This document shows positions 18,718 to 61,395 of a stretch of 64,000 nt of DNA, in pieces. A program made the translations under genes and the position numbers. The first letter of the stretch is position 1, and every line of letters starts with the position of its first letter. A model generated the notes under the pieces. That model did no database searches. It was not told where the DNA came from and was given only the letters and a program-made list of their open reading frames with translations. Source of the DNA: Prasinococcaceae sp. CCMP 1430 (taxonomy: Eukaryota; Plantae; Prasinodermophyta); contig RQSC01000005.1 in the NCBI GenBank assembly GCA_013416795.1, positions 413,943 to 477,942 on the forward strand. The letters are read 5' to 3'.

Positions 18718-21700
18718 ATGTCTGGCTCCGGCACTAGCAGCCTCTCGAGGCATGCGTACAAGGTGTGCGACCTACTCAAATGCTCGCGGCTGATCCGCGA
18801 GAAGACGGAAGGGCGCAAGCAGCTGAAGGAGGCCGTGCAGTCGCACCCGTTCGTCGACATACTGCTTCGCAACACAGACGGCATGGACCCCCAGCTCTCG
18901 AATGAGGAGATCGATCAGAAGGAGTGGCTGTGCTCCTGTCCGGGCGTCGCTGAAATCGCGTGTGAACACATCGACCAGGAGGTGGACGCGGTGCTTGACA
19001 AGATCGAGCGCGAGCGTCGCAGCGTGGCAGGGCACGGCGCCGGCGGGCCAAGGAAGAGGACGGAAGTCGACAGTGCCCTCGCAAAGGTGCTGCGTGGTCT
19101 TGTGGTCGCTGTGCACGCACGCGTCGTCGAGTTGAGAAGGTCGCATGATAGCGAGGGCGGCGTCGGAGCGCCACCAGACGATGCCGCGCCACCCTTCACG
19201 AGAGTAGCGAAGGCAATCCTCAACCACATCGCAGGCATCCTCGATCGTGACGACACATTCGTGGCGTTCGAGGGCGACTACATTCAGCTGCTGCTCAACT
19301 ACCTTTTGCCAACCCCTGCTTACGCCTCGAGGCTCACGCCAAAGATCTTCAAGAGCCTGATGAAGACGTTCACGTCAAAGCTGCAACTGTTCGCGACCGG
19401 TCGGGGGCGCGTCACCGAGTCGCAGGCGCACGACTGCGCGCGCGCGCTGCAGGCACTCCTGCGGTACTACCAGCGAGATCTGTCATCCGGCGAGAAGCCT
19501 GCGTGCGTCGAGGTCGCCGAGGCGCTCGCCACGGTGTTCGAAAATATGCACGACGAGGGCCGGACGGCAATGGCGACTGTTGGGGCCCTGAACGAGCTCA
19601 TCGCGCGCGATGGCGTCAACATGAGCAGCAAGTTGCTCACGCTGCACGAGTCCAGCATTGCCTCATTTGTGTCGGCAGGCCTAGCGTCCTCGACGAAGCT
19701 GGCCGGGCTGAAGGAGGCGCTCGTCCTCCACTCTCGCATGATGCTGGCTCTGGGTGCTGGTTCGAATTTGCGCTCGATGGCCATCCTGTTCTCGCTCTTG
19801 GAGAAGGAGCTCAGCGCGCCCATGAAGGTGCTCGGGTCCGACCAGCGCCACGCACACGGACTTCCTCTGCCGCGCCGGCACGTTGGTGCGTTGCTACTGG
19901 CAGCCGACGTTTGTCTCATACTTGTGCGCGCGCCTGCTGAAGCGCAAAGCGCCGCCGAGCCAACGCAAGATGATCGCGAGCACGATGCGGTGGGTACGCT
20001 TGGGACGCTCAGGAGCACTCGCGGTCACAGTCGCAGCGTGCGCATGCGTCGAGCACCACCTGCTGAGCGACTTGCGGATGCATTGATGAGTGGACGAGGC
20101 CTATGGCCCATGCTAGCGGCAGTGATTGCGAGGCGACACGGCCAAAGTCTGCCCCCACGTTGTCGATCCATGTGGCTGGCAGCTGCCGTGACAGCCCTGC
20201 CGGAGGTCATCACTACGGCCGCGGGCAACTCTGCCTCTGCGGCAGGAGCGAGCAGCGGGGGCAGTGGCGCGCAGGGCGACTGCGAAGATAGCGCAGTGCA
20301 CGCTACGTGGCTTACTCGCTTCGTAGCGGCGTTGGCCGTTTCATGGCTTGATGACGAGAGCTCGACGACCTCGATGGTGGACGGGGCCCAGGTGGGGCTA
20401 GCCATCGCAAAGTTTGGCGTGCGCGCCGAGTCATGGCCGGCTGATGCCGCTCTGTTGCCTGCACTTTGGTGTCGAGCTCGCGACTGCCTGGTTCGGTGGC
20501 TGCCCTCGCTTGGCGATTCGGAGCTCGCACACGAGGTGTGCCGCGCCCTAGCAGCGATCGGGCGGCGGGCGCTTGTACCAGGAGAGCTGCTGCCGGTTGA
20601 CGCATGGCGGGCGCCTGCGATGGCCGCGTTCAACCTCGAGCCTTCGTCATCCTCCTCTGCCGGCGCGGGCGATCTGAAGCGAGGCACTGCGAAGCCCGCG
20701 GCACCCGCGATCGAATTGATTTCAGCTATCGCCTCCTCCCCCGTCCAGTCCCAGTGGTCAAGTGCCTCATTCGACACCAAGAGGAGCACACTGCGCACTT
20801 CTCTTGCTGCGTGCCTGTGCTTGGTCATCCGCCATGCTACACCGAGCTCTGCTGGGTCCGACCAGAGTCAGAGTCAGGCAGAGGTAGGTGGTCGAGTGTC
20901 ATTCAGCCACACGACTCTCACTCGAGCCGGTGTCACGCGTGCTGTCGACACATTAGCCGCACTGTGCTTCAACGCGAGCAACGCCACGGCCGACTGCTTT
21001 GGGCCACCCGAAGAGGTCAGCGAGTCGCGCAACTCGTTGTTCGACTCGACGGCGCTGACGGAGGATCGCTACCATGACTCGGAGGGCGTCCTTACGGAAG
21101 ACATCATCCCCTGGCTCGAAAGACACCATGATAAGCTCGCCGAGGGCACAGTGGTAGCGCCGGAACGGCTGGATGCACTCATGGGTCTAGATGTGGCTGG
21201 CGTGCAGGCTCAGGCGAGATACATGGTGTCTAGCAGCGTGGGCTCTGCCCTCAGCTGCCGAAATCTATCGAGGGAAGCGGCGTCGCTCATCTCCGACGCT
21301 CTCAGGCAAAGCGCGGGCGATCTTGAGACGTCAACTGCATTTCCAGCCCGCGATCGCATTGCCACGCCACATTCCGTGGGCAGTGTCGGCGCGATGGCAG
21401 GGATTTTGACCCAGCGGGCCAGGAGCGCACAGCCTGCTGGTGAACGAGCTGGCAGACGAGTCCAAAACGTGCTTGCGCTGTGCTGTGCAGCGGGGGTTTT
21501 GCGAGGCGGGTGCCAGAATGCAGCAGCAGCCGCAGGCACGTCCGCTCCGAGATCGAGCTGGGGCGATGACGGCGACGTTGCGAATGCTGCAGATCTGGCG
21601 GCAAGCGTCGTCACCGCAGCTGTCCGCCACGCAGCCAATCTCACGAAGGATGTTGATGCGCTCAAGGATGCACCCACGCGCTTGGCCTCAGTCGCCGCGA

Positions 21701-24700
21701 TTGCCCGCGGCGTTCGGGACGCGCTTCGGGGGGCCGGGAAGGCAGCGATTCCGGGCGGCGGTGACACCAGCACCCGTGGGCTGTCGGCAGGGGCAGCAGT
21801 GGACCTGGCGCAAGCGCTATTGATCGCCTTCGACACATGCATCGAAGTGTGGAGGAGGGCCCGCGAAGACGATGCGGATGACCAGAGCCGTGGTCGTGCA
21901 GTCCGCAATGCCTCTTCCGCTGTATTTGACGATGATCTCGATGGTGGCGACGCATTGGCGCCAACGAGGCCAGGCAACAGCTCAACTTCGGGCTGTCTGG
22001 CCGCAGCGAGCCCTGAAGCGGCCGCAGAAGCCACCAGCTTGATTGTGATGGAAGCACTGGCTGAGCTTCGAGGGCCCGCACCAGAGCACGTCTCAGATGC
22101 AGTAGTGAAGGCGCTCACAGGCGACTCGCAGGATCTGCCTCCACGTCGCGTGCGCGAGCTGGCCACGGGCGTAGCCTCGCGCCTCGGCATGATCTGCTCG
22201 ACTAGCAACGCCCATGATGCCATGTTTGAGGAGATAGACGCTCAGATGACGATGCACTTGAGCCAGGGCTGCGGAGATGTCATGGATTTCGGCGCGGCTG
22301 CGCCAATTGTGCAGTGCTTCACACGAAGTCTTCGGAGCCTCGAAGGAAGCGATGGCGTCACTGAAACCGAGAGTACTGCTCTGCTAGAGCGTGCAAATGC
22401 TGTGCGAGATGCTCTTCGCGGCTTTGACGCCAGCCAGAGGACGTGGAGGGCGCGGTGCGCTTTGGCAGGCTTGGCGGCGCAGCTCACTCGTCTCGATGCA
22501 GGAGAGTTCTTGCCGATGGCGCAGGCCTTGCTCCCCAGCATGTGCAAAGATGACGACTGGAGGGTGCGCGCGTGCGCTGGCGCTGCCATCGCCACGATAT
22601 TCGCTGTCGCCCCGTTGAGCACTCATGGGAAACTTGCAAATGCATGCACGCAGTCTCTGTCGTTGGCATCTCCGGCGTGCGTATCCACTGCGGGCCGCCC
22701 GCCCACTGAAGACGCTCGTGCAGGCGTCGCTGTAGAACACGCAGAGACTGCTGCGCTGACGCTGGCGTCGCTGGCTGTCACCAGCCCCGTGGCCGAGTCG
22801 CAATGCGTGATTGCCCTGTGTGTCCACGCTGCTGGTTCTCAGCATACTCGGAGCCTCGTTTTCGCATGCCTCGGCATCGTTGCTGAGGTGCTTGGGTACT
22901 CATCCGTTGTCTCGCTCGCATCCCGGCACAAAGCAGCGCTACTTGGGCGATGGGTTGCGAAGCGATACAGCTTGCCTGACCTCAAGTATCTGCAGGTGCT
23001 CTTCGACGTCATGCCAGACGAGGACGACGAAGGTATGGACGCGGAGGCTGAAGCCGACCACGACCTCGACGAGGTGCTAAGTCGGCTACAGGGTCCTCTC
23101 GTCGCTGCGCTGGTGTGCCACGAGAGACGCACCGAACTGGACTGGCTCGCCTCGCGCCTGGGTGTGCAGCCAAAGATGCTAGTCCGAGGGAGCTTCGGTC
23201 AGGTCATGGCTTGGACGCTCACAATGATGGTGAACTTCCGCGGTGCAGGCCGCGAGTCTCAGGCGGCGAATGTGCTTTCTTTCAAGTGCGTTTCGGGCCT
23301 CAACAAAGAGGAGGCCGCGGAATGGATCGGACAACCAAGGTTGTTGCTGTGGATGGTTGACGAGACCCTCAACCTCGTGAGGGACGAGCCATGCGGCGGG
23401 CCTGAGGACGCCACGCTGGCCCAGAGTGGAGCCATGGCGGCAACGGTGGCTTCTGGAGCCGCGACAGGGACGGAAGATAGCGGCGGGGCATCATCCGTCG
23501 CGTGGCCGAATTGCGTCGGCGCGACCGCAACGGCGGCGATGAACACGCTGGCCTCGTTCATGGGTGGGAAGGGGGCCTTGGCAATGCACATCGTCCCAGA
23601 CGGTAGAGTCAAGCAGCACTTGGTCCAGGTTCAGTACATTGAGGACTCTGCGCAGGGCTCCCAACGGCACCGGGCTGACGCGCTGGCTGCGCTCAATGTT
23701 GTGGTGGCTCTTCTTGGTGAGAGGGCGACGGCCCCCTTAGTCGTCCGACACGCGACTGCCATCGCCCTGCGCATGTCCAAGTCGCCCGGCCTCGCCGAGC
23801 GTGCGCTGATGCTCGTGCGGACGCTCATTGCTAAGTCGACCCGATTGGGCGCATGGCAGGGCGAAACCAACTCTCCCGACAAGGAGCTGGCGTTCGATGT
23901 CGTCGCAGATGTCATGCCCTCGCTCGTCGCGACAACATCAACGCTGATCGACGAAGGATACACGCCGGGTGGGCCTCAGACGTCTACAACGCAAGCGTCT
24001 CTGAAGCTTGTACAGGAGATCTTCATTGACTCAGCACCGGCGAGCGTCAGCTCGGTGGCTGCTGAGATGGAGCCGCTGCCCGATGTGCCCGAGCTCGCCA
24101 ATGCCTGTCTCTGGCAGAGAACTGTTGCTGGGGAGACACCCCTTGCGACAGCTGTGAGAGCATTGTCGCGGCGTGCACCCGCGATGTCTTTGCGGGGGCG
24201 AGAGCGGGCGTGCACCATGTTGCAGGCGCGCATGCGAGGCGGCGGCGAAGGAGGGGGTGGTGCTGTGATGGCAGCCGCGCGTGAGCTGGCGGGTGTGGCT
24301 GTGTCTCTGGGGGATGACGGCCTGGTCAATGTGGCTGCGTCCGTGCTGTCACGCGCTGCACTTGAGCCACCCAAGACCGGCGTCGCTGCTGTCGATCCAT
24401 GTGCCTTGGTGACACCTGTGCGCCATCCGGGACAGCACGCACCGAAGGGTGCCGAGAGCAGCAAGTGGCCGGTGTGGCGTGTGGCGATGGGCGCGCACGT
24501 GCTCAAGGCCCTTTGCGACCTCAGTATCTGCCCAGTGCACAAAAATGCCGCCATGGCCGAGCGCGCGTTGCGACACGCACTCATGTTCATCAAGAGAGAC
24601 ACTGACCCTGCCGTACGTGACCGCTACAACTTGGTATTCAGCCTCCTGAGTGACGCAGCCGCTGGCGGGCAGCGTGAGAGGTTTGTTGCTCCACTCACGC

Positions 24701-27700
24701 ATCTTCACGCGGCATATCTGAAGCCACTGTTCAAGCAAGCAAACCCCAGCCCAAAGCGCTTGCAATATGCAAAATTGGATGCGCGCCAGTTGTGGTCGTC
24801 CGATGAATCAGCCGGCGGCTTCGACCGCTGGGTGTGCCAGCTTACCCCCGCGTTGATATCATACGCGGATGGCGAGATGCTGCTGCAGGAGTGCTTCCAG
24901 CTGGCGTCGAATGTCCCCTCGTTTGCTCAGGACCTGCTTCCGCACGCCGCCCTTGCAGCTGCGCTTACGCCCCGGCCTATCGAAGACGGGCATTTGATTG
25001 CCGAGGCTGTGGCCGACGGTATCGTGACACACACTCTCCCCGCTGGCGGACGCGCGGCGGCGGCGATCCTATCGATGCTTGAAACGCTGCGGCAGGCACA
25101 CAGACAAGATATGCGCGTAGCGAGATCGCGGCAGAGCCTCGAGGGCACGCCCAGGGCATGGCTGTGCCCTTGCTGGGCGCCTGTCGACAATGTGTCCGTG
25201 GCATACGCGGCGCTGCGTGCGAACAAACCCGTGACCGCCTTGCTCTGGGCGGAGATGGCGTACGAGGAGCAGCGCAATGGCCCTGTTACAGCGGCACCTG
25301 GAAGAAGGAGCGCGAGGAAGGCGCCACGCCCTTCGGGTGGATGGGATGCACTTAAGGGCTTGGCCAAGGTGGAGCTACCAAAGCCAGATGGATCGCTTGC
25401 GCGACCGGTGCAAGCGCTGCTCGACTGCGCCGCTGCCGTCGGCGAAACTGACTCAGTGATCGCCGCCGCGCGCGGCGCCGGGGCAGATGCGCGCGTCGCC
25501 CGCGCGTGCGCGAGTGGGAACTGGTTAGGTGCCCTACAAGCGTCTGACTCGATGCTGTCGGGCGGAGACCGTGGTGGCATGCCCATTCGACGTCGACTGG
25601 AGCTTGTGGAGTCGGCGTCTGCCGCGCTGCGCGCGCTCGGCTGTGAACACGTGCGCGCGAACCTCGTGGGCGCGACTGCATCTCATCTCGGTGGCTCCTG
25701 TGCCACGCGATTGGATCCAATGCAGTGCGAGGTGGCCTGGCGCCTCGGCCAGTGGCAGTCTATCCAGGACGACGCCTCGATGGCTGGTGATCGAGGAGTG
25801 CAAAGAAGGGTGGGGAGCGCAACCACGGACGGATCGTTCGATGGGCTCATGCTCCGCGCTCTCAGTTCCACCTCTGCCGGTGATAGCACAGGGGCACAGA
25901 AGGCGCTGCGCTCGATGCGTTGCGGCGAGGCACGGCAGATGGTATCCATTGGGACCGAGCGTGATTTAGTCTCGAGCGGCATCCTTGGGAGGCTGCTGAT
26001 CGTCGATCAAGTCGAGGCGGCAGGGGCGCTCAGGGCAATCCGCGTGAGCTGTGCGGACGGTGGGTCTGACACGCAAGACATGGACTTAGACTGGGCCGCC
26101 GCCAGCGGGCAGAGCGCTGGTGACGGAGCTGAGAACGCGTGGGTGGAGAGGTGGTGCGCTATCCGTGCGCGCCTCAGCCAAGCGGGCGGCGGTGGATTCG
26201 AGCACACGGAGGTGCTGTTCGCAGCCGAGCGCGCGACTTTGCTGCTGCTGCCTGCCGACGAGCAAGCGTCGCAGATAGCGCGCTGCGACCTCGAGATGGC
26301 GCGCAGGGCACGCAAGGCGGGCTGGCGCGGCGCAGCCGCTGCAGCACTCGAGCGCATGTCTGGCAGCGCAGCACAGCACGTGGCAGGCCGTGCACAGATT
26401 GAGCATGCCAAGCTCCTCCATGCCGATGGTGAGAGTGGAGAGGCAATTGCCTGCCTTCAGCACGTGACCAATGGCACTTTGGAGGGCGGCGATGCAATGT
26501 CGTCCGATGATGGCGCATCTCTCAAAGCGTATGCTATGTACCTTCAGGGCAAGTGGCTCGCGTCTGGAATGTCCGACAGTGCCCGCAACGTGCTCGAGCA
26601 CTATCTTCGCCCGGCCGCGGAGGCGATGGCCGCGGAGGCGATGGCCGCGCTTGCGGAAGGTGATGTGAGCGACGACGTGAGAGCCGCCGGCCACAAGGCG
26701 AAGCTGGCTTGCCGCGCCAACTTTCACCTCGCCGCGCTTGCCTCGCGCGCGTATCGGAACGCAGCTGAGCGCGAGACCACGGGCGAAGGGCGTGCCGTGA
26801 TCGAGGCTCGGCAGATGAGGCGACGCGCGCTCGACTCTGCGAAGCAGCGGCTGAGTGAGCGTGGTGCGAAGATGGAGCAAGCGACGAAGGTCATGCTCAA
26901 CAGGAAGATTCGCAACCTTGAAAACACTGTCAAGCTTGACGCTGAGGAGGAAACCACTGAGATCTCGGTCAAGCGCGACCTTCTACACGCGGCCGCAGCA
27001 GGCTACGCGCGCGCCATGAAGCTCGGTGATGCGTACGATCTGTCTGCTGCGTTCAGTCTGCTCAGAATATGGTTCAACCACTCGGACGACAAGCATGTCA
27101 TGCGAGAGGCATGCGAGGCCGCCCAAACGCTGCCTAGCCACAAGTGGCTCTGCGTCGTGTACCAGGTGGCCGCGAGGCTCGATGAGACGACAGCGCACAA
27201 CGAGGAGTTTCAAAAAGCCATCTGCGCGCTGCTCGTCCGCCTCGCGAGCGATCACCCCCACCACGCGTTGCCACACATCATTGCGCTCAAGAACGGCGAC
27301 AGGCTAACTGCGGACAAGAAGTGCGCCAAGGAGGCATCAGGGACGGGCCTGCATGGTGTGGGCAAGCGCGCGGCAGCCGAGGCCGTCTTGACCACCGTGA
27401 AGGATTCCAAGACATATGCGTCGAAAGTCGCACACGCGACTGATCGGCTCGTTGATGTGTATTTGGACATCGCATTCAAGACCACCCAGACGCATCACCA
27501 CCCCAATGGTCAGCGTGTGAAGACTCACGGCCCTCTGCCGGACAGCGCGCGGGCGGTGCGCGGCCTTGGGGAGGCCGCCATTTGCACTGCGCTCCCCCCT
27601 CCTCGCCCGGATGCCTGCTATGACAGCCACGACGCGCTGGGTTCGTTCCCCCGTTTCAATGGCTTCGTAAACCCGCACCTCCCACCGGACAACCCCGGCG

Positions 27701-28791
27701 GCATCAATGCGCCCATCCTACTCAAGGTATCGGGCACGGACGGTGTGGCTTACCGCCAGCTCGTGAAGAGCGGCAGCGACGACCTACGCCAGGACGCCGT
27801 GATGGAGCAACTTTTCGAGCTGGTCAACCAGCTGCTCGCGCGGTCGCCGGAGGCCGCGCGCCGCAGGCTTCGCGTTGGCACATACCCCGTCGTGCCTTTC
27901 TCCCCAGCGGCCGGCTGCGTTGGGTTTGTGTCTGGTGCCATCGAGCTCGGCGACTGGCTCTACAAATCTGCTGGTGGCGGCGCGCACGGGCGCTACCGTC
28001 CGCAGGATTGGGGCTTCGCGACATGCAGAAGGGCGATGGTCGACGCGCGCGGCGGTGGAGGCGGTGGCGGCGCGCTCGTGCAGCGGCTTGTGGATGAGTA
28101 TGGCCGGGTGTGCGAAAACTTTCGACCGGTGCTCCGCCACTTCTTCACCGAGCACTTCGACACTCCCAGCGAGTGGCTCGAGCGTAGACTCACGTACACG
28201 CGCTCGGCCGCCGCCAGCTCCGTCGTGGGCTACGTGATGGGCCTCGGAGACAGGCACGCCAGCAACATCCTCATTTCGACAAGCACTGCCGAGGTTACGC
28301 ACATCGACCTCGGCGTGGCCTTCGAGCAAGGTCGCATGCTGCGCATACCCGAGACGGTGCCCTTCCGGCTCACGCGCGATATGGTGGACGGGATGGGCGT
28401 GCACGGCGTGGAGGGTGCTTTCCGCGCGTGCGCGGGCGTAGCCATGGGGGTCATGCGGGCGTCCAAGGAGGCGCTGCTCACCATCGTCGAGGTCTTCATT
28501 CATGACCCACTCTACACGTGGGCGATCAACGACATTGCGCGCGACCAGCGCCAGCGGGACATGGATGATGAGGGCACCGACGAGACGGGCACCGTCGCGG
28601 ATGTGGCAGAGGAGGGGCCCTCGCGCAATTCGGAGGCGGAACGCGCGCTTGGGCGCGTGCGCAGCAAGCTCGATGGTATTGAAGGGGGTGAGTTTTACGC
28701 GCCCGACGGGCAGGTCGCCAAGCTCATCAACGAGGCGCGTGACCCGCGCAACCTTGCCGTGCTCTTCGCCGGCTGGGCGCCGTTCTTGTGA
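18718..28791 (+). CDS. ATM: ATM/Tel1 PIKK serine/threonine kinase (3357 aa, apparently intronless)
   Basis: N-terminal TAN-like L.CSRLIREKTEGRKQL, FAT region, GGINAP, LVKSGSDDLRQDAVMEQ, catalytic GLGDRHASNIL and HIDLG, PETVPFRLTRD, FATC GQVAKLINEARDPRNLAVLFAGWAPFL. Confidence 0.93.
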   Translation: MSGSGTSSLSRHAYKVCDLLKCSRLIREKTEGRKQLKEAVQSHPFVDILLRNTDGMDPQLSNEEIDQKEWLCSCPGVAEIACEHIDQEVDAVLDKIERERRSVAGHGAGGPRKRTEVDSALAKVLRGLVVAVHARVVELRRSHDSEGGVGAPPDDAAPPFTRVAKAILNHIAGILDRDDTFVAFEGDYIQLLLNYLLPTPAYASRLTPKIFKSLMKTFTSKLQLFATGRGRVTESQAHDCARALQALLRYYQRDLSSGEKPACVEVAEALATVFENMHDEGRTAMATVGALNELIARDGVNMSSKLLTLHESSIASFVSAGLASSTKLAGLKEALVLHSRMMLALGAGSNLRSMAILFSLLEKELSAPMKVLGSDQRHAHGLPLPRRHVGALLLAADVCLILVRAPAEAQSAAEPTQDDREHDAVGTLGTLRSTRGHSRSVRMRRAPPAERLADALMSGRGLWPMLAAVIARRHGQSLPPRCRSMWLAAAVTALPEVITTAAGNSASAAGASSGGSGAQGDCEDSAVHATWLTRFVAALAVSWLDDESSTTSMVDGAQVGLAIAKFGVRAESWPADAALLPALWCRARDCLVRWLPSLGDSELAHEVCRALAAIGRRALVPGELLPVDAWRAPAMAAFNLEPSSSSSAGAGDLKRGTAKPAAPAIELISAIASSPVQSQWSSASFDTKRSTLRTSLAACLCLVIRHATPSSAGSDQSQSQAEVGGRVSFSHTTLTRAGVTRAVDTLAALCFNASNATADCFGPPEEVSESRNSLFDSTALTEDRYHDSEGVLTEDIIPWLERHHDKLAEGTVVAPERLDALMGLDVAGVQAQARYMVSSSVGSALSCRNLSREAASLISDALRQSAGDLETSTAFPARDRIATPHSVGSVGAMAGILTQRARSAQPAGERAGRRVQNVLALCCAAGVLRGGCQNAAAAAGTSAPRSSWGDDGDVANAADLAASVVTAAVRHAANLTKDVDALKDAPTRLASVAAIARGVRDALRGAGKAAIPGGGDTSTRGLSAGAAVDLAQALLIAFDTCIEVWRRAREDDADDQSRGRAVRNASSAVFDDDLDGGDALAPTRPGNSSTSGCLAAASPEAAAEATSLIVMEALAELRGPAPEHVSDAVVKALTGDSQDLPPRRVRELATGVASRLGMICSTSNAHDAMFEEIDAQMTMHLSQGCGDVMDFGAAAPIVQCFTRSLRSLEGSDGVTETESTALLERANAVRDALRGFDASQRTWRARCALAGLAAQLTRLDAGEFLPMAQALLPSMCKDDDWRVRACAGAAIATIFAVAPLSTHGKLANACTQSLSLASPACVSTAGRPPTEDARAGVAVEHAETAALTLASLAVTSPVAESQCVIALCVHAAGSQHTRSLVFACLGIVAEVLGYSSVVSLASRHKAALLGRWVAKRYSLPDLKYLQVLFDVMPDEDDEGMDAEAEADHDLDEVLSRLQGPLVAALVCHERRTELDWLASRLGVQPKMLVRGSFGQVMAWTLTMMVNFRGAGRESQAANVLSFKCVSGLNKEEAAEWIGQPRLLLWMVDETLNLVRDEPCGGPEDATLAQSGAMAATVASGAATGTEDSGGASSVAWPNCVGATATAAMNTLASFMGGKGALAMHIVPDGRVKQHLVQVQYIEDSAQGSQRHRADALAALNVVVALLGERATAPLVVRHATAIALRMSKSPGLAERALMLVRTLIAKSTRLGAWQGETNSPDKELAFDVVADVMPSLVATTSTLIDEGYTPGGPQTSTTQASLKLVQEIFIDSAPASVSSVAAEMEPLPDVPELANACLWQRTVAGETPLATAVRALSRRAPAMSLRGRERACTMLQARMRGGGEGGGGAVMAAARELAGVAVSLGDDGLVNVAASVLSRAALEPPKTGVAAVDPCALVTPVRHPGQHAPKGAESSKWPVWRVAMGAHVLKALCDLSICPVHKNAAMAERALRHALMFIKRDTDPAVRDRYNLVFSLLSDAAAGGQRERFVAPLTHLHAAYLKPLFKQANPSPKRLQYAKLDARQLWSSDESAGGFDRWVCQLTPALISYADGEMLLQECFQLASNVPSFAQDLLPHAALAAALTPRPIEDGHLIAEAVADGIVTHTLPAGGRAAAAILSMLETLRQAHRQDMRVARSRQSLEGTPRAWLCPCWAPVDNVSVAYAALRANKPVTALLWAEMAYEEQRNGPVTAAPGRRSARKAPRPSGGWDALKGLAKVELPKPDGSLARPVQALLDCAAAVGETDSVIAAARGAGADARVARACASGNWLGALQASDSMLSGGDRGGMPIRRRLELVESASAALRALGCEHVRANLVGATASHLGGSCATRLDPMQCEVAWRLGQWQSIQDDASMAGDRGVQRRVGSATTDGSFDGLMLRALSSTSAGDSTGAQKALRSMRCGEARQMVSIGTERDLVSSGILGRLLIVDQVEAAGALRAIRVSCADGGSDTQDMDLDWAAASGQSAGDGAENAWVERWCAIRARLSQAGGGGFEHTEVLFAAERATLLLLPADEQASQIARCDLEMARRARKAGWRGAAAAALERMSGSAAQHVAGRAQIEHAKLLHADGESGEAIACLQHVTNGTLEGGDAMSSDDGASLKAYAMYLQGKWLASGMSDSARNVLEHYLRPAAEAMAAEAMAALAEGDVSDDVRAAGHKAKLACRANFHLAALASRAYRNAAERETTGEGRAVIEARQMRRRALDSAKQRLSERGAKMEQATKVMLNRKIRNLENTVKLDAEEETTEISVKRDLLHAAAAGYARAMKLGDAYDLSAAFSLLRIWFNHSDDKHVMREACEAAQTLPSHKWLCVVYQVAARLDETTAHNEEFQKAICALLVRLASDHPHHALPHIIALKNGDRLTADKKCAKEASGTGLHGVGKRAAAEAVLTTVKDSKTYASKVAHATDRLVDVYLDIAFKTTQTHHHPNGQRVKTHGPLPDSARAVRGLGEAAICTALPPPRPDACYDSHDALGSFPRFNGFVNPHLPPDNPGGINAPILLKVSGTDGVAYRQLVKSGSDDLRQDAVMEQLFELVNQLLARSPEAARRRLRVGTYPVVPFSPAAGCVGFVSGAIELGDWLYKSAGGGAHGRYRPQDWGFATCRRAMVDARGGGGGGGALVQRLVDEYGRVCENFRPVLRHFFTEHFDTPSEWLERRLTYTRSAAASSVVGYVMGLGDRHASNILISTSTAEVTHIDLGVAFEQGRMLRIPETVPFRLTRDMVDGMGVHGVEGAFRACAGVAMGVMRASKEALLTIVEVFIHDPLYTWAINDIARDQRQRDMDDEGTDETGTVADVAEEGPSRNSEAERALGRVRSKLDGIEGGEFYAPDGQVAKLINEARDPRNLAVLFAGWAPFL

Positions 28792-29700: not shown

Positions 29701-30089
29701 CGCGCGGCTCGGCACACACCCCATCGCAGGCACGCGCAGTGGCAACCCCCCCACCCCACCCCACCCACCCCACCCCCTCCATCGCCCCACCCCGCCTGCA
29801 GGTGGGGGAACCTGACGAAGGAGGAAACGGTCAGGTGGAGGTTAAGGTTACGATCGCGAGGTAAAAGGGTTCTTTGGTTTGTAGGGTTTGCGGCCGCGTT
29901 TCGAACGCGCCCCGGCCCGGGCGCCGGGCGAGGGGGCCCGCCGCGCGGACGACGGCCCGAATTCCCTGAAGCACATGCATTGGTGAGGGAATTTCGTGCA
30001 ATTATGGGTGAAAGGACACGCACTATTTTTCTGATTGCGAGATTTCGTGCGTGCGCGCGGCGGCGGCGTAGTGGCGCGCTGTGCTTTGG

Positions 30090-33064
30090 ATGCGCGCCTT
30101 GCCACCGCGTGCGCGCTTCTTGGAGCGCGTGTCATCGTCGNGGACGGCGGTATCGACGCCCCCGCCGCGCGTGGGGCGCCCGCTGGCGCCGGCGTGCCGC
30201 TCGGCTCGGCGCCGCCGCTGCCGTGGCTGCCCGGCGGCCCCGCGGCTTGCCTGCAGTCCATTGCGTCCGGCGCCACGCTGTGGGTGGGCTCGGCGGTGTT
30301 CGCGGTGTCGTTCGCGACGCTCATTTTCAGCGGGCCGGGCGCGCCCGACGACGCGCTCGCTGAGGGCATCGGCGTGGTACTCTTCAGCAGCGCGGTGAGC
30401 GCGGTGGTCGTGGCGTCGGCCAGCTCCATGCCGGTGGTCGCCGAGGTGCAGGACGGCCCGAGCGCGCTCTTCGGCCTCATCGCCGCGGACATTTTCTCGG
30501 GAGGTCTTCCGCAGGAGCTCATGCTGCCAACCCTGGAGGTAGCACTGGCGCTGACGTCCATAGTGTCCGGCGCGGCGTCAGTTGCCGTTGGCCGGCTCCA
30601 ACTTGGCACCGCCGTGCGCTTCCTACCGCAGCCGGTCGTCGGCGGCTTCCTGGCGGGCACCGGCTACGTGCTCGCGTGCGGCGGCTGGAAGGTGCTCACC
30701 GGTGAGCCTGTGTCCCTCGCCGGCGTGGAGGACGCGCTCGCCAACCCCACCGACGTGTACGCCACGCTGCTGCCGGGCGTGGCCTTCGGTGCGCTGTTGA
30801 CGTACGCCACGAAGCGCTCGCAGGAGTTCTATATCATCCCCGCGTGCATTGCTAGCAGCACCGCCGCGTACTTCGGCGGCATGTTCCTGTTCGGCCTCGA
30901 GCCGCAGGCGGTGATGGACCACGGATGGCTTTTGGGACCGTTCGAGGGCGTGGGCGATGGGCCCTTCCCGTTCAAGCCGCTCGCCCTTGACCCGCTGCGC
31001 CTGCTGCGCGTCGACTACGACTACGTGCTCGACCAGCTCCCGCGAGTGGCGACCATCGCGTCGCTGTCGGTCCTCGGAGTGCTGCTGAATGTCTCAGCGA
31101 TCGAGGTCGCGCTCGACCGCGACTCGAACGTGCGCTCCGAGCTCCAAGCGGCAGGGTTCGCGTCCATCCTGAGCGGGCTTGGTGGCGGCGTTGTCAACTT
31201 CCACTCGCTGAGCTCGACGTCGCTCGCAAAAAGCATGGGATCACGGAGCAGGCTGGAGGGGCTCACGGTGGGCGCCTGCTACCTCATCGCGCTCACTGTG
31301 GGCATGCCCTGGCTGGCCTTTGCGCCGCGCGCGCTCACCGGGGGGCTGTTGCTGTTCTTGGCCTTCGCCTTCCTGTACGACTGGGTGCTGACCGGGTGGC
31401 TCCGCATGCCGCGCGACGAGTACGCGGTGGTGGTGACCATCCTGTTTGCCATCGCGGCCTTCGGGTACTTGGCGGGGGTGGCGATCGGCCTGCTGGCAGC
31501 GGCGGCTATCTTCGTGGCGGATTACTCGAAGGTGCCCATCGTGCGCGCCTCCTTCAACCTTTCCGAGGAGGAGGGCGTGCGCTCGAGTGCCAGCTACTCC
31601 TTCGCGCAGCGGCGTGCAATCGGCGCGCGCGGGCGGCAGGCGTACGTGGTGGTGCTGCAGGGCTTCATTTTCTTCGGGACGGCCTTCAACCTTCTCTCCG
31701 AGCTGCGCGAGGTCGCGCAGAGTGCGGCCAACGCCGCCGCCGAAGGGATGGCCGACGCCGCGACCCCGTCCGCGGTGGATGACACTGGGGCACCGGCGTC
31801 CGAGGGACGCAGGGACGCCGAGGATGGTTCCGCGCGCAGTGCGCCGCAGCCACTGCGGTTCGTGATCCTTGATTTCTCATACGTCGTCGGAGTCGATGGT
31901 TCGGCCGTGAGTGTCTTTAATAAGCTGCGTTCCTTCGCCGAGGCGAGCGGCATTACGCTGGTGCTGTCTGGTATCGACTCGGCACGCGATGACCTCCGCG
32001 AGCTAAGCGCTGTCACTACGCGCGGAGAGATGGTCTCGCAGGGCCTCGTCGAACGTGCCAAGGGCGCCTCCCTCGACGAGACTGAGGGCGAGTCTGGCAT
32101 CGGCGCGGCAGACTTTGCTGTGCGAGTGGATTCGTTCGATGACGCGCTGCGCGAGGTGGAGGCGGCACTGCTGAACCAGGTGCCGGCTGAGGAATGGGCC
32201 GAGGTCGATGCTGCCAACGCGAACACCAGGGGCGGTGGCGCTGACGAGGGCGCCGGCACAGGCGCGGCGGTAGACTCTGCCGACGCGAGCGTGGGCGCGG
32301 GCGCGGGCGCGAGTAGCACCGCGTCCAGGGATGGCTCGGCGTCGGCGGGTGCAGCCATCCAGGGCAAGCTTTTCCAAGGCCGTACTGGGCGTGTCGAGTC
32401 GTTCGAGGATGTGGTGACCCTCGTGTGTCGCGACCGCGGCCGCTCCGGCGAGCTCTTCCCTGAGGACGACTCGATCCTGGTCCCGGGCGCTGGCCAGCCT
32501 CCGCACGAGGCCGAGAGCGCGCACGCGCTGGACGAGGACTTCTTCCGCGCTTGCTGGAAGCCGTTCGTCTTCGAAGAGGGCGACGTCGTGTGCCGTCGCG
32601 GCGACGTGGCCGACCGGCTGTACTATATCGAAAGCGGTGCGTGGACTGCCAGCGCGCCGGGCGGGCTGCTCTATCCCATCGAAAACGACTTCGTGGGCGC
32701 AGTGGGCTTCTACAGGAGCGCGTACTCGGGCACTGTGAGGTTTGCCGACTTGAGCGTGTCGCGTCGTGGAGTGGCGTGGGTTCTGGATGCCGATGCTGTG
32801 GAGGCGCTCGAGCTGCAGGCGCCCGAGCTGGCGGCCGCCTTTCACCGCGTGATGGCGTCACATCTGGCCGACACACTCGTGTCGAGGTCGCGCCTTGTGG
32901 CGCAATACTACCGCCGCAGCATGCCCCGCATCGCCGGCAGCGAGGACTCTGACGGCGACAACGCCGGCAGTGACAGCGACGACGGCGCGCGTGTTGGCTC
33001 GGACACGCCGGCTGTGGATGGGCGCGAGTACGACGGCTATAACACGGCATCGGAGTCTGGCTGA
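30090..33064 (+). CDS. SulP/SLC26-family anion transporter with STAS and C-terminal cyclic-nucleotide-binding domain
   Basis: AEVQDGPSA, VRFLPQPVVGGFLAGTG, ELQAAGFASILSGL.GG, STAS VLQGFIFFGTA...VILDFS.V.GVDGSA, cNMP FEEGDVVCRRGDVADRLYYIESG. Start tentative: the ATG at 30090 is out of frame across n30141. Confidence 0.85.
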
Positions 33065-34837: not shown

Positions 34838-36131
34838 ATGGTGCTCCACCCGGCGGTGGTCGTGCGCGACCACCCCAAGGGCAGCAAGTACGGGCGCGGG
34901 CTGTTCGCGGCCGCGCCGATCGCAAAGGGCGAGGTCGTGTGGCTCGAGGACCACGAGGCCGAGCCGCAGCACGTCGTGGTGGCGCGCGACCGGCGATGGA
35001 TCGAGGCACTGCCGCCGGGCCCAAAGGCGGCGTACAAGCACTTCGTGTATCAGACCGGCGAGGACGAGTTCGAGTCGCTGCCTGAGTTCGACGTGCTGCC
35101 ACAAGAGGCGTGGGTGCGTCGGGAGGCGAGGGGTAGCACGCCCGCGCGGCGTAGAGCGCCGAATGCGGAAGCGGCGCCACTGACCGCGACGCCGCTCTGC
35201 CTCCCTGGCCGCGCGCAACGATCCCTCCACCGCCATCGCGCGCGCGCAGGCCCAGGCGGAGCCCGCGGATGTGTCCATGTACATGAACCACAGCTGCGAC
35301 CCGACGACGTGGTTCGAGTTCGACCACGAGGCGTACGTGGATGGGCCGGGCGTGATGACCGCGCGCCGCGACATCGCGGCGGGCGAGGAGCTCACCTTTG
35401 ACTACGCCACGAGCGAGGGCGCATTCGACCAGCCGTGGGTGTGCTGTTGCGGCTCGACCACTTGCCGCGGCACCGTGCGTGGTTGCGATTGGAAGCGCGC
35501 GGACCTGCAGGAGCGCTACGAGGGCCACTTCATGCCGTACCTCGCCGCGCGCATCTCCACGCTGCGTGAGCAGCGGCGTGCCGAGGCGGAGTGCGTGGAG
35601 CGCTGGGGGGTCACGCTCATGCGTAGCGACGAAAAGCAGCTGGGAAGGTACCTCGTGGTCAAGCGGCGCGTACCCAAGGGCGCCGACGTGATGGTTCTGC
35701 CGCCGAATCGCATCCTCAGGCACCACGAAGTCGACGACTTTGAGCGCATTCTGACTGTGCGCACGTCGGAGGACCCGGCTGACACCACAGGCGCACTGTA
35801 CAGCTACAGCCAGACGCCGGAGGACCTGGACAACTTCATGGCGCACTCGTGTGACCCCACCTGTGAGGCGGTGATCGACCCCGACACGCTGTGCGTCACG
35901 ATGCGCGCGCTGCGCGACATACCCGAGGGCGGGCTCGTGTCTTTCGACTACGAGACCACAGAGACGGACATGGTCGTGCAGGGGTGCTCCTTCACGTGCA
36001 ACTGCGGCGCTCGCAACTGCAAGGGCCATATCGTCGGCTTCCACGCGCGGCAGCGCATGGAGCAGGCCCGAGCGGGGCCGACGGCGGCCGCGGCACTCAA
36101 GCCGCCCGCGTGCAGCCCGGTGCCGGTCTGA
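34838..36131 (+). CDS. Protein with two tandem SET + post-SET domains
   Basis: Exons 34838-35113 and 35250-36131. SET1: GRGLFA, YMNHSCDP, RDIAAGEELTFDY, CCCGSTTCRG. SET2: GRYLV, FMAHSCDP, RDIPEGGLVSFDY, CNCGARNCKG. Confidence 0.88.
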
Positions 36132-36301
36132 CGCACGCGTGCTCCAGACTGGCTGCCCGGTGCGGCAGCGCAGAAATCGCGTATCCCGGGTCTGACGCCG
36201 CGTGCACTGCCACGTCGCGCAAGCTGCGACAGGGGTTTCTCAAAACCACACAAACATGTATAATGGAGAAATTTGTACAAACACATATACTGTACCAAGA
36301 C

Positions 36302-37460
36302 CTACGCAGTGGCGCCCTGACATGAGCTTCCCGCGCCTGCGGTGCAGCCATAGCAGTGCGAGTCGACCGTGACCTGCCTCCCCTCAAGCTGCTCGAGGCT
36401 CTCGAGCTCGAAAATGGAGCGCGGCGCACCGCCGCCCGCGCGCATGCCAAGTTGCTGATTGAAGTCGCAGTCATACAACGACCCGTCCCACGACACGGAG
36501 ACGGTGTTGGTGCACATGACATTCTCCGCAGCCGCAAGGTTGAAATTGTTGACGAGCAGCTCCATGTACTCACGCATCTTGCCCTCGCGTGCGAGCTGGT
36601 CGGCGAAGCGCTTGATGGGCATGTTGGTGAGAGCCAGGAGCGAGTCGAAGCTCACGCCGTAGCAGTCACGCAACTCGGCCTTGTACGCTTCCTGTAGCGA
36701 CGCCTGCGGGGGCGGGAGGAACGCCCTGCACGTCCATGCGCGAGCGCGTGTCGGCCGTGTCAGCAGGTGGCGGCGCGGGGGCGGCCTCAGCGGCGCACGC
36801 ACGGCCGCAGGCGCGCACTCACCCGCCGGGATTGTAGACGAGGTCCAGCAGGCGCTCCCCGCTGCCGTCGCCGTAGCCGCGTTCGTTGAGCTCCCGGAGC
36901 GCGCGAATGGAGCGGTCGAACACGCCGCGTCCGCGCTGCGCGTCCACGTTGGCCTCCGAGTAGCACGGAAGCGACGCGACGATGCGCACTTTCTGTTCTG
37001 CGAGGAAGTCTGCAAGGTCCTCCATGCCGTCCTCGCAAAGCACGGTGAGGTTGCAGCGGTCGATCACCTCGAGTCCCATCGAGCGCGCCTCTCGCACTAG
37101 ATAGCGGAAGTTTTGGTTGTACTCGGGCGCGCCGCCGGTGAGGTCGAGCGTGCGCACGCCGGGCGATGCACGCAGCAGCGCGATTATCTTCTCGGCGCCC
37201 TCGCGGCTGAGCGCCTCGGTGCGCAGCGGCGAGCTCTCCACGTGGCAGTGCGCGCACGCCTGGTTGCAATACAGCCCGACGTTGATCTGGAAGATTTCCA
37301 CCGTGCGTCGCACGAGCGTGTGTGCGGGGGCGCCCGCCTCCCCGCTAGCGCTCGCCGCCGCCGCTGCGCTCTGCAGCTGTTCGCCGAAGGGCTTGAGGCC
37401 CGAGACGTCGAGAGCGCGCCGCCGCGCGAGCCGCTCGGCGCGCGCCCGCTCGCGCGCCGC
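36302..37460 (-). CDS. arsS: Radical SAM/Cys-rich protein of the ArsS (arsenosugar biosynthesis; DUF3641) family; 5' end in gap
   Basis: QINVGLYCNQACAHCHVESSP (CxxxCxxC), LDLTGGAPE, IDRCNLTVL, VASLPCY...NVDAQRGRGVF, LDLVYNPGG/AFLPP, TNMPIKRF, MC...SVSWDG.LYDCDFNQQL, HCYGCTAGAGSSCQG. Intron 36726-36822 (phase 2). Confidence 0.88.
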
Positions 37461-37966
37461 NNNNNNNNNNNNNNNNNNNNNNNNNNNNNNNNNNNNNNNN
37501 NNNNNNNNNNNNNNNNNNNNNNNNNNNNNNNNNNNNNNNNNNNNNNNNNNNNNNNNNNNNNNNNNNNNNNNNNNNNNNNNNNNNNNNNNNNNNNNNNNNN
37601 NNNNNNNNNNNNNNNNNNNNNNNNNNNNNNNNNNNNNNNNNNNNNNNNNNNNNNNNNNNNNNNNNNNNNNNNNNNNNNNNNNNNNNNNNNNNNNNNNNNN
37701 NNNNNNNNNNNNNNNNNNNNNNNNNNNNNNNNNNNNNNNNNNNNNNNNNNNNNNNNNNNNNNNNNNNNNNNNNNNNNNNNNNNNNNNNNNNNNNNNNNNN
37801 NNNNNNNNNNNNNNNNNNNNNNNNNNNNNNNNNNNNNNNNNNNNNNNNNNNNNNNNNNNNNNNNNNNNNNNNNNNNNNNNNNNNNNNNNNNNNNNNNNNN
37901 NNNNNNNNNNNNNNNNNNNNNNNNNNNNNNNNNNNNNNNNNNNNNNNNNNNNNNNNNNNNNNNNNN
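37461..37966. other. Assembly gap containing the divergent 5' ends of arsS-like and the next gene
   Basis: 506 consecutive n. Confidence 1.
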
Positions 37967-39014
37967 CGGGCGGGGGGCGCGGCGCGTGCGCGCGTGCCGG
38001 GCGCAGGCGCGGCGTGCGACGGAGGAGCGGGTTGGGGAGGCTGGCTTCGACCCGCTGCGGATACTGGAGGGAGACAGCAGCGGCGGCAGCAGCGGCAACG
38101 ACGGCGATGCGCGCCTGTCGGCGCTCCCAGTGGTTGCGGCCGCGGCTGCGGCGGCGCTCGTCCCGGAGGTCCTGTCGCCGGCGAGCGCGGCGGCGGCCTC
38201 TGCGAAAGCGGCGGCGAACATCGACCCGTTCTTCACGTTCACCCCCGTGTGCCCGTACTCGGATGGCGTGTTTCGCGGCGGCCAGAAGCTGGCCCTCTTC
38301 GTCGCCGGCAATGACAACATCGAGGACTACCGCCCGCTCATCAATGACGTGCTCATCCGCGTGCGGACGGAGCTCTGCGTGCTTGAGAGCTTCACCCGCG
38401 AAACAGCGGTGCCCTTCGTGCAGGAGAAGGGCGTCGGGTGGGTGCTGCCGCTCCACGAGACCTCGGAGACATACCTCGCGGGCGTCGTTTTCATGGTAGG
38501 CGCGAACTTCATCCTTCTCGGCAGCACGAAGGTCGTGGCCATCCTGGCCATCTACCACGACCTTGTGCTCGGACTGCCGACGCGCACACTCTCAGGGCTG
38601 CTGGGACTCGCGGGCGTCGACGAGGCGGCCAGGGCGGACAAGGAGATAGAGGCACTGCTGGACAAGCAGGGGGAGGAGATGAAGGCGCTCATGTCCGACC
38701 GCGCGCTGGACCGCGACGAGCGCGAGCGCAGAACCGCAGAGATCACGGCGAGCTACTCCGATCGGATGGAGAGCCTGCGCTCTGGCGCTGACGAGGCCAT
38801 GGAGAAACGCAGCAAGAGCGCAGTGGGCAAGGCGATGAGCGCTGCGACAGCACTGTCTGTGCCGCTCGGGGTCTACGGCAAGCTGAGCTCCAAGCTGCGC
38901 GAGGTGCTCGAGCTCTTCGACACGTTCTGCTCGCGCTACTTCGTGGCGGTCACGGTGTTCTACGTCATCATCAAGTCTGTCCACTTCGTCCTTTTCCCGG
39001 ACATCTTTGGCTGA
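37967..39014 (+). CDS. Hypothetical membrane protein, probably plastid; 5' end in gap
   Basis: High-GC3 ORF. Transit-like linker, ordered domain FTPVCPYSDGVFR...YRPLINDVLIRVRTELCVLESF, two or three hydrophobic segments and a coiled-coil stretch. Confidence 0.7.
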
Positions 39015-58409: not shown

Positions 58410-61395
58410 CGCCCCCGCGCCTGGCGCGCTGCGTCGAGCCCCGCCGCGCGCGCTCGTGCTTCCGCCGCCGGCCGCGCTCACGCCCGAGGCCTCGGTGCTT
58501 GCGTCAGTGGCGAAGGACTTCGCCGCGATGGGGCTCGGCGCGGCAGTTTTGCTCGCGGGCATTGCCTCCACCGACCAGGGGCGCGCCATCCTCACGAGTG
58601 GCGGCGCAGGCACGTACCCCGCAGATGACGGGGAGGCCGGCGGAGGCGGCGCCCGCGAGATGCTCTGCGGCGTCGACGTGACCGGGTTCGAGGTGATGAG
58701 CCACCCGGACGTGCGCCGCGCCGCCGAGTTCGCGCGCGTCGCTCACCGTGGGCAGCAACGCAAGACTGGGGAGCCGTACGTGAACCACTGCATCGAGGCA
58801 GCGCGCATTCTAGCGGCGACGGTTCCCGCAGACGAGGTTCTGTCCGCGCGCGCGGTGGAGACCGTCGTCGCGACCATCGTGCACGACTGCGTGGATGACA
58901 CGCCCGTCACGCTCGACGAGCTGCGCAGCGAGTTCGGGCCGGCTGTCGCGTCGCTCGTGAGCAGTGTGAGCCGCGTAGGAGACGTCACGCAAGTGCTACG
59001 CCGCAAGCGCTTCATGAAGGAGCTCGCCGGCCGTGCGGGGACCACGTCGGATGGACGCGGCAACCTGCCCACTCGCCTGTCGCAGCTGGAGGAGGGCGCG
59101 CTGCTGGGCATGTTGCTCGACATGGTGGACGACCCGCGTGTGATACTAATCAAGCTCGCTGACAGGCTACACAACTGCCGCACGCTGTGGGCGCTGAAGC
59201 CGTCCAAGCGCGAGGCCGTCGCCGACGAGACGCTCGTCATCTGGTGCAGTCTGGCGGGCCGCCTGGGACTGTTCGCTGTCAAGGCCGAGCTTGAGGACCT
59301 GTGCTTCGCCGTGCTCGACCCCGTGGCCTTCGCGTCTGTGCGCCACGGCCTTGATGTGATGTGGACGCCCGCTGGCGCGGAACCGCCCGCCGCGCCAGAG
59401 GTGCCGGGCGCCGACGCGCCAGCCGAGGACGTGCGCGCGTTCATGGGCTTGGTCATGCCCTTCGAGGTGCTCAACGGGCGCGCGGGCGGGAGCGCCCTCG
59501 AAGCTGCGGGCGCCCGCGCAGAGGGCGTGGACGTGCACCTGCCTTCCGCCGCCGCGACGGAGTCGCTGCACGCCATCGAGGGAACGTTGCTGCGCGAGCT
59601 ATACCTTCGCGTAGGGTACGTGCCGGGGACGGAGGTGCGCCTATACGGGCGCCTCAAGTCCATGTACTCAACGTACTGCAAGATGCTGCGCAAAGGCGTG
59701 GCGCTCGCACAGGTCTATGATACGCGAGCGCTGCGCGTGGTCGTCGGTGTGACCGCCGACACGGCGAAGGCGGCGCAGGTGACGTGCTACCGCATGCTCG
59801 CCACAGTGCACAGGCTGTGGGCACCCGTTGCCGGTGAGATGGACGATTACGTGGCCAACCCTAAGCGCAGCGGCTACCAGAGTCTGCACACAGCCGTGAT
59901 AGCGCCGGACGGGGCGCCGCTCGAGGTGCAGATTCGCACTCAGGAGATGCACGAGATGGCGGAGTACGGCGACGCAGCGCACTTTCTTTACAAGGAGTCG
60001 TACACACCCGAGGACAACGCGGCCATCCTCGACCTCGACGGGACCGAGTCAGCGGAGGAGGAGGACGGGGAGGGCGCTTCGGTGAGCGACGCCATCGACT
60101 GGCTCACAGATTTAGACAAGCTCATCGGTGAGGTACCCTCGGACCGCCGCGGGCGCCGCGCGGAGAAGCTGCGCAAATCGCTCGCGAGGCGCGCGGCCTC
60201 GAAGGACGGCGCGGCCGCAAGCGGTGGCGCAGTTGAGCACGCTGTTGACGTCGAGAGCGGCGTGGCCGCGCAGAGCCGCGACGCTGCGATGGCGCAGCTC
60301 GCCGAGGGCGCGGGGAGCAAGCCTGCATCTGCTCAGGAACACGCGCTCTCTGCTGTCGCAGCCGAGTCGTGGAGCGGACGCCCCATGCTGCGAGTCGACA
60401 GGGACGTACTTCTCGATTCTGTGACTATGGACGTGCTCGACGGTGGGAATGAGCTCGTGGTGGCGACCTACACCGCCGGGCGTCTGCTTGAGCCCGAAGC
60501 GGCAGCGCGCGATCGCTGGGAGCCATATGCTCGGGCCGCGCGCCACGCTGCGTCGCGCGGGCTCCGCCTGCCGGGGCAGAGCGACTCGGACGTCGTGCTG
60601 GAACGCTTCGTGCTCTGCCAGGATGGGCTGTACCACAGGACGGATGTGTACGACCACAAGAGCCACATCTTCCTTACTCCGATGCAGGTGGATTCCGAGT
60701 TTAGGCCTATGCTCGAGAACGCACGTGCGATGGCTGCAGGGGCAGGGCGGTCGCCTGAGCCCGTCGGCGACGGGGTGGCCGCCTTGGATGGCCGGTCGCC
60801 GGATGGCTTCGAAGGCGAGGACGCCGCGCCGCCTCCGGAGAGCGTCAGCACGGAGGACACGTCGCGGCCGGCTGCCGCGGAGAGTGACAGTGCGGTTGTG
60901 CTTGCCAACAAGGCGCGCAAGCTGCGCTCAATGTTGCAGTGGGACATCGAGGCCGAGATGGCTCAACTGAGCGAGGACACCAACGCCGTCGAGGCGTTCG
61001 AGGCCGCGATGGCAGTCGAGGCCGCTACCGACGCGGCCAACGCAGAGGACGGCGATACCTCTCTCAGCACGACCAGTGTGCTGATGCTTCCAAGCGGCAA
61101 GATTTTGCAGGTGCCACGCGGCGCCGACGCCACTGACGCGGCCGTCCAGGATCTGAAGGCGCGCGACGAGCTCGAGGTCCTTCCAGGCCTGCTCGCCGAG
61201 GCGCGCGCGAAGGTTGCAAAGACTTGGACGCTGGTCGTCAACGGCACGGAGATTAAGGCCGACTTGCCAGGGCCCCAGCTCAATCCTGGCGACGTGGTCG
61301 AGATGATTCCGAAGGCCACCGGCCCCGATTTGTCGGTGCCCCTCAGCTCGCACGGGGAGTACGAAACCGCAAGCAATCGAACGCGCCAGCAGTGA
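58410..61395 (+). CDS. RSH: RelA/SpoT homologue (plastid ppGpp synthetase/hydrolase); N-terminus probably truncated at n58409
   Basis: HD domain (AHRGQ.RKTGEPYVNH, HDCVDD, IKLADRLHN), synthetase (GRLKS.YS, D.RALR, EMDDYVANPKRSGYQSLHT, EVQIRT, AEYG.AAH), TGS-like C-terminus. Confidence 0.92.

Follow-up and report, generated by a model that had tools for sequence, protein, structure and literature searches.

A transcribed and spliced algal gene for an ArsS-family radical SAM enzyme, probably of the arsenosugar pathway

Among the arsenic compounds of marine algae, arsenosugars and arsenosugar lipids are the chief ones, and they are one way in which arsenic enters seafood. To our knowledge, the only arsenosugar biosynthetic genes shown as such by experiment are cyanobacterial. 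The ArsS enzyme of Synechocystis sp. PCC 6803 is reportedly the subject of Xue et al. 2019 (Environ Sci Technol, doi 10.1021/acs.est.8b04389), as cited in PMC11009773. In the reaction of bacterial ArsS, which is redox-neutral, the 5'-deoxyadenosyl radical adds to DMAs(III) and 5'-deoxy-5'-dimethylarsinoyl-adenosine (DDMAA) is formed (PMC13598754). The family is known and curated, along with the reaction that it catalyses and the gene clusters in which bacteria carry it, and the algal gene reported here is an expected member of that family. A search of the open literature, a scope outside which the primary ArsS paper falls, returned no description or test of any eukaryotic ArsS.

The flanking open reading frames of 80 bacterial ArsS loci (L001-L080) were clustered. 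The paired "arsenosugar biosynthesis glycosyltransferases" TIGR04283 and TIGR04282 were found in 35 of the 80 loci, an ArsM-type methyltransferase in 17 (that of L010 scoring 549 bits with NF038099, "arsenosugar biosynthesis ArsM") and an MTA phosphorylase in 12 (NF005657, 482 bits in L005), with 45 loci having at least one of the transferase pair, ArsM or MTA phosphorylase. The MTA phosphorylase recurs together with ArsM and TIGR04283/TIGR04282 (for example in L016, L030 and L062), and on this gene context it is a candidate for the removal of adenine after the ArsS step. Proteins of the DUF547 family were also present in eight of the 80 loci. On a Pseudanabaena plasmid (L091) the annotated gene order is arsM-TVP38-arsS.

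The window, by which we mean the whole 64-kb stretch of DNA that was analysed, has a GC content of 68% and contains several N gaps. At positions 36302-37460 of its minus strand lies a two-exon gene whose 5' end is cut off by one of these gaps. The features of the gene are:

37461..37966, no strand: assembly gap of 506 N, which covers the promoter, the start codon and some 20-33 codons of the N-terminus
37460..36823, minus strand: exon 1, 5'-incomplete, defined by its translation and by RNA contigs over 36822-37457
36822..36726, minus strand: spliceosomal intron of 97 nt, GTGAGT...GTGCAG, 78% GC, phase 2, defined by RNA contigs and by the continuity of the profile match
36725..36302, minus strand: exon 2, the DUF3641 Cys-rich C-terminal domain and a TAG stop (36304-36302), defined by profiles
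36268..36301, minus strand: short 3' UTR of about 20-35 nt, defined by the transcript contig ends at 36268-36281

Exon 1 encodes a peptide of 213 residues (window:36822-37460, minus strand; it contains CNQACAHCHVESS) that comprises an N-terminal helix region, a 12-residue Ala/Ser-rich insert and the radical SAM core, in which the motifs CNQACAHC, IDRCNLT and SLPCY can be recognized. The peptide from exon 2 has 140 residues (window:36305-36724, minus strand) and carries a Cys-rich tail with MC, DCDFNQQ and HCYGCTAGAGSSCQGATA, directly followed by the TAG codon. The intron splits the second Gly of a YNPGG motif, and the reading frame is open throughout both exons. The complete CxxxCxxC motif and Cys-rich C-terminus that the sequence-only reading had described are therefore both in place, the former as Cys65, Cys69 and Cys72 of the exon 1 peptide and the latter in exon 2.

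That reading had also assigned the protein to the ArsS-type radical SAM enzymes, and the profile searches bear this out. TIGR04167 ("arsenosugar biosynthesis radical SAM (seleno)protein ArsS", NCBIfam) is a full-length equivalog profile with a curated cutoff of 300 bits. It matched exon 1 over profile positions 2-165 (225.9 bits, E 6e-67) and exon 2 over positions 166-302 (182.5 bits, E 1e-53), so that the match runs on without a break across the splice junction. The two scores add up to about 408 bits, a figure to be read as approximate since the exons were scored separately and each alone falls below 300. The next best NCBIfam family reached only 37 bits. From Pfam, Radical_SAM (PF04055) matched exon 1 with 49.6 bits, while DUF3641 (PF12345) matched exon 2 with 180 bits over all 134 of its positions (1-134). 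In an alignment with 95 family members, the window protein kept 93 of the 94 columns that are at least 90% conserved, the exception being a Met-to-Leu change, and every family-conserved cysteine was present. The columns of the CxxxCxxC motif are invariant in these members, and CNQACAHC fits them. The C-terminal DUF3641 cysteine motifs MC, DCDFNQ and HCxGCTAGxGSSC were likewise found, with Cys71, Cys86, Cys124 and Cys127 of the exon 2 peptide in columns conserved to at least 93% and Cys135 in the SSC motif. Identity to bacterial ArsS was 55-64% over the core. The profiles of peptide-modifying SPASM/twitch radical SAM maturases (e.g. TIGR03962 and NF045574) stayed far from their thresholds, the best giving 37 bits (cutoff 265) and 34.9 bits (cutoff 625).

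Compared with the cyanobacterial enzymes, the algal protein follows the same plan of a radical SAM core and a DUF3641 Cys-rich domain, with the CxxxCxxC motif and all of the family-conserved cysteines. Its identity to the two cyanobacterial ArsS sequences sampled (L056 and L091) was 47-52%. It differs from them in having a longer N-terminal helical region and the 12-residue Ala/Ser insert and in belonging to a separate clade, and its gene differs from theirs in being nuclear, in containing an intron and in not adjoining arsM.

The ArsS family is overwhelmingly bacterial and the gene adjoins an assembly gap, two circumstances that would be expected if bacterial DNA had contaminated the assembly, or if a bacterial gene had recently been inserted and were not expressed. 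Transcript evidence speaks directly against both. A search of sequencing runs for the window DNA found the whole stretch in eleven DNA runs of the organism, which are marked as possible sources of the DNA, and in three runs of unguessed kind. RNA evidence came from two marine metatranscriptomes and from two RNA-like runs of the organism, which held 60-81% of the words. Contigs from these four RNA or RNA-like runs, which belong to three studies, were compared over positions 35900-38600. Each of the four runs (X15, X16, X17 and X18) had a contig from which exactly 97 nt are missing, between 36724 and 36822. The missing segment has CT..AC ends on the plus strand, hence GT..AG when read on the minus strand, and is the modelled intron in all four. 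The gene is thus transcribed and correctly spliced, both in cultures and in the sea. Furthermore, the GC3 of the exons (0.87 and 0.84) resembles that of the neighbouring genes (0.82-0.89), these neighbours are eukaryotic (a PIKK, a SulP-STAS-cNMP transporter, a SET-domain gene, a Lon protease, a RelA/SpoT homologue (RSH) and a WD40 gene), and the gene sits in a clade made up of eukaryotes only (see below). We regard contamination or a silent bacterial insertion as refuted by the splicing, with practically no probability left to it. The proposal from sequence that the gene is eukaryotic and intron-containing, and not simple bacterial contamination, thus agrees with the spliced intron, the GC3 and the neighbouring genes.

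With its 5' end missing, the gene might be taken for a pseudogene, truncated or in decay. There is no start codon to be seen, and the longest transcript contig (X15) reaches only to 37457, which is 3 nt short of the gap; the 5' end was thus not recovered from RNA. The truncation coincides with a run of N, however, and is therefore to be put down to the assembly gap rather than to a biological break. The open frame, the retention of the conserved residues and the correctly spliced transcripts also argue against decay, and we hold the pseudogene explanation to be very improbable. Since the start of the homologues precedes the first window residue by about 33 alignment columns, some 20-33 codons are probably missing in the gap. 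The conserved N-terminal motif was not found on the minus strand beyond the gap at 37461-37966. An exact 30-nt pattern from exon 1 had no match in JGI metagenome contigs, and a scan of the same contigs for related loci gave a single distant fragment (54%). In a protein collection of 5.8 billion clusters, over the length range searched, there was no copy of the window's own ArsS among the matches, the best being 70% identical. It is therefore likely that the public annotation is missing or mis-modelled, the gene model at 36302-37460 probably being absent or wrong owing to the gap.

A word-based protein search with exon 1 returned thousands of relatives. The best match (P0001, 70% identical) comes from contigs that are intron-poor, gene-dense and eukaryotic, with Ist1, Mpv17, a CDC48-like AAA ATPase and TCP1 as neighbours. 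The homologues from named eukaryotes were found in Asterochloris, Apatococcus, Chlamydomonas incerta (HXX76_009932, annotated as "Fe-S oxidoreductase"), Chlorokybus, Spirogloea, Ectocarpus, Sphacelaria and the transcriptome MMETSP1389, and were 55-65% identical over 93-100% of exon 1. Eukaryotic homologues are already present in many published algal genomes under generic names. The N-terminal region that the eukaryotic homologues share with the window's protein has the motif GQxALTxEERxxRRRALDxxGxPxF, which is absent from most bacterial members, and the homologues open with an acidic M-[ED]-x-D-x-E start. The 12-residue Ala/Ser-rich insert is peculiar to the protein of the window. The homologues have no transit-peptide-like extension, and the enzyme is therefore probably cytosolic.

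The introns of the relatives were also compared. In Chlamydomonas incerta (L085:9500-9770) an intron lies 4 nt upstream of the position of the window's intron, in phase 1, at the first Gly of YNPGG. Strict homology of the two positions was rejected on account of the 4-nt offset and of the difference between phase 1 and phase 2; the near-coincidence may represent either independent gain or intron sliding. The Ectocarpus homologue has its introns elsewhere, and P0001 differs from the window gene in having none.

Two trees were built, a quick one of 127 rows and a careful one of 67 rows, and their placements agreed. The gene groups inside the ArsS family, in agreement with the sequence-only reading. 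In the careful tree both exon rows fell in a clade supported 100/99, which holds every named eukaryote, whether a green, streptophyte or brown alga. The same clade also holds metagenomic proteins, and all of those that were checked, P0001 with the neighbours given above among them, have eukaryotic gene contexts:

P0017, on L088: TPT translocator and HHL1-like gene adjacent
P0023: LHC gene adjacent
P0027: NOX-type ferric reductase adjacent

No bacterium from the 80 best genome loci fell inside this eukaryotic clade, which is nested among bacterial ArsS. The bacteria nearest to it are L016, L003, L002 and L038, which lie in arsenosugar-type clusters. Within this nearest group, L016 has the transferases, ArsM and MTA phosphorylase together, and therefore the closest bacterial relatives sit in clusters of the arsenosugar type.

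The two cyanobacterial ArsS sequences, from Prochlorococcus (L056) and from the Pseudanabaena plasmid (L091), fell outside the eukaryotic clade. The cyanobacterial sample of the trees consists of these two and leaves out the characterised Synechocystis enzyme, and it is at this sampling that the trees suggest a non-cyanobacterial origin of the eukaryotic clade. A wider scenario is put forward tentatively, as possible rather than probable: algal ArsS may not have come from cyanobacteria with the plastid but may form one ancient, eukaryote-only clade of probably cytosolic enzymes with their own N-terminal helix, common to prasinodermophyte, chlorophyte and streptophyte algae and to brown algae and other stramenopiles. 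A bacterium other than a cyanobacterium would have been the source of a single acquisition, after which the gene would have moved from one algal lineage to another, and algal ArsS would be the long-sought enzyme behind the arsenosugars that dominate the arsenic of seaweed and phytoplankton.

The context of the gene was also searched for other arsenic genes. The sequence-only reading had observed that arsM is absent from the window, and tblastn searches of the 64 kb with ArsM-like queries, 17 of them taken from the bacterial loci plus the ArsM of Pseudanabaena and that of L010, likewise found none. Nor was an ACR3, MTAP or TIGR04282/TIGR04283 gene found in the 64-kb window. Among six eukaryotic contexts, linkage to an arsenic gene was seen in one (L088) and in none of the other five. 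In this eukaryote-like contig the ArsS homologue P0017 lies 2.9 kb from a gene for the arsenite efflux transporter ACR3:

L088:5941-7515, minus strand: ArsS homologue P0017
L088:1916-3028, plus strand: ACR3

The ACR3 protein scored 315.7 bits with TIGR00832 (cutoff 282.8) and has an N-terminal extension of about 185 residues.

Taken together, the results show a native and transcribed nuclear gene of a GC-rich marine alga, encoding a radical SAM enzyme of the ArsS family, and we consider it probable that this enzyme belongs to the arsenosugar pathway. We infer the arsenosugar role from family membership and from the arsenosugar clusters of the bacterial relatives. The function would be transferred over some distance, the eukaryotic clade standing apart from the two cyanobacterial ArsS sampled. 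That separation, at 100/99, would also be expected if the eukaryotic clade had kept the family's chemistry but acted on another substrate, such as methylated selenium or antimony or a thiol, or in another pathway, with arsenosugars coming from elsewhere. The N-terminal helix that most bacterial members lack would fit such a specialization, as would the lack of a linked arsenic gene in the window and in five of the six eukaryotic contexts, and the family was first noted for selenocysteine-containing members, as its name rSAM_SeCys recalls. We nevertheless judge another substrate to be unlikely, given the 55-64% core identity to bacterial ArsS with 93 of 94 conserved columns and all cysteines kept, the arsenosugar-type clusters of the nearest bacterial relatives, the linkage of one homologue with ACR3 in a eukaryote-like contig, and the fact that the algal groups with the gene are known arsenosugar producers (PMC11009773). 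As a prediction, the earlier proposal that the gene performs the adenosylation step in the alga is well founded.

As an arsenosugar enzyme, the protein would work as follows. The CxxxCxxC cysteines would bind a [4Fe-4S] cluster, and reductive cleavage of S-adenosylmethionine by this cluster would yield a 5'-deoxyadenosyl radical. This radical would add to the arsenic of dimethylarsenite, and the resulting arsenic-centred radical would give an electron back to the cluster. The product would be DDMAA, the committed intermediate on the way to arsenosugars and, probably, to arsenosugar lipids as well. Dimethylarsenite would be supplied by an AS3MT/ArsM encoded elsewhere in the genome, as would be the enzymes of the later steps (adenine loss and glycosidation). 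AS3MT is reported from green algae, among them Micromonas, Ostreococcus, Bathycoccus and Chlamydomonas (PMC5398495), and both arsenosugars and arsenosugar lipids are made by green algae (PMC11009773).

If confirmed, an algal ArsS would put a name to the eukaryotic enzyme, would allow arsenosugar output to be predicted from genomes and metatranscriptomes, and would give knockouts in model algae a target. The window itself brings a limited gain, because the same gene is available from many algal genomes already published. Its contribution is an RNA-supported, corrected model of a gap-truncated gene, one which the protein collections searched seem to lack.

The fold of the family was viewed through an AlphaFold model of P0001 (95 sequences; pLDDT 90.6), which has a long N-terminal helix, a radical SAM core and a compact C-terminal domain. 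The nearest solved folds were the SPASM/twitch enzymes SuiB (5v1t), SkfB (6efn), BlsE (7vob) and anSME (4k39) and MoaA (1tv7), with TM-scores of 0.44-0.52 and identities of 13-18%, the likeness lying in a common partial TIM-barrel radical SAM core. With the nearest folds being SPASM/twitch enzymes at a TM-score of about 0.5, the model points to a core chemistry shared with them. The window exons score only 20-37 bits with the SPASM/twitch families of NCBIfam, far under the cutoffs. The ArsS family has no solved structure: the searches matched none by sequence except for a weak hit of exon 1 to 8wm2 (26.5 bits, E 4.4e-05), and found no solved relative of the DUF3641 domain.

Some features of the neighbouring genes may also be recorded. 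The transcript of the convergent SET-domain gene on the plus strand ends at 36268 and that of the adjoining ArsS gene on the minus strand at 36268-36281, within about 13 nt of one another. The tract between the two genes is AT-richer (56% GC) and forms a tight convergent terminator region common to both. On the other side, a divergent plus-strand neighbour at 37978-39014 is transcribed, as seen in RNA contigs; its 5' end is lost in the gap, its product belongs to no Pfam family, and membrane-like segments are predicted in it. Three further plus-strand genes are long single reading frames: an intronless frame of 3357 residues at 18718-28791 encodes an ATM-like PIKK with PI3_PI4_kinase, FAT and FATC domains, the one at 30035-33064 encodes a SulP sulfate permease fused to STAS and cyclic-nucleotide-binding domains, and that at 58456-61395 encodes a RelA/SpoT homologue with HD_4, RelA_SpoT and DUF7589.
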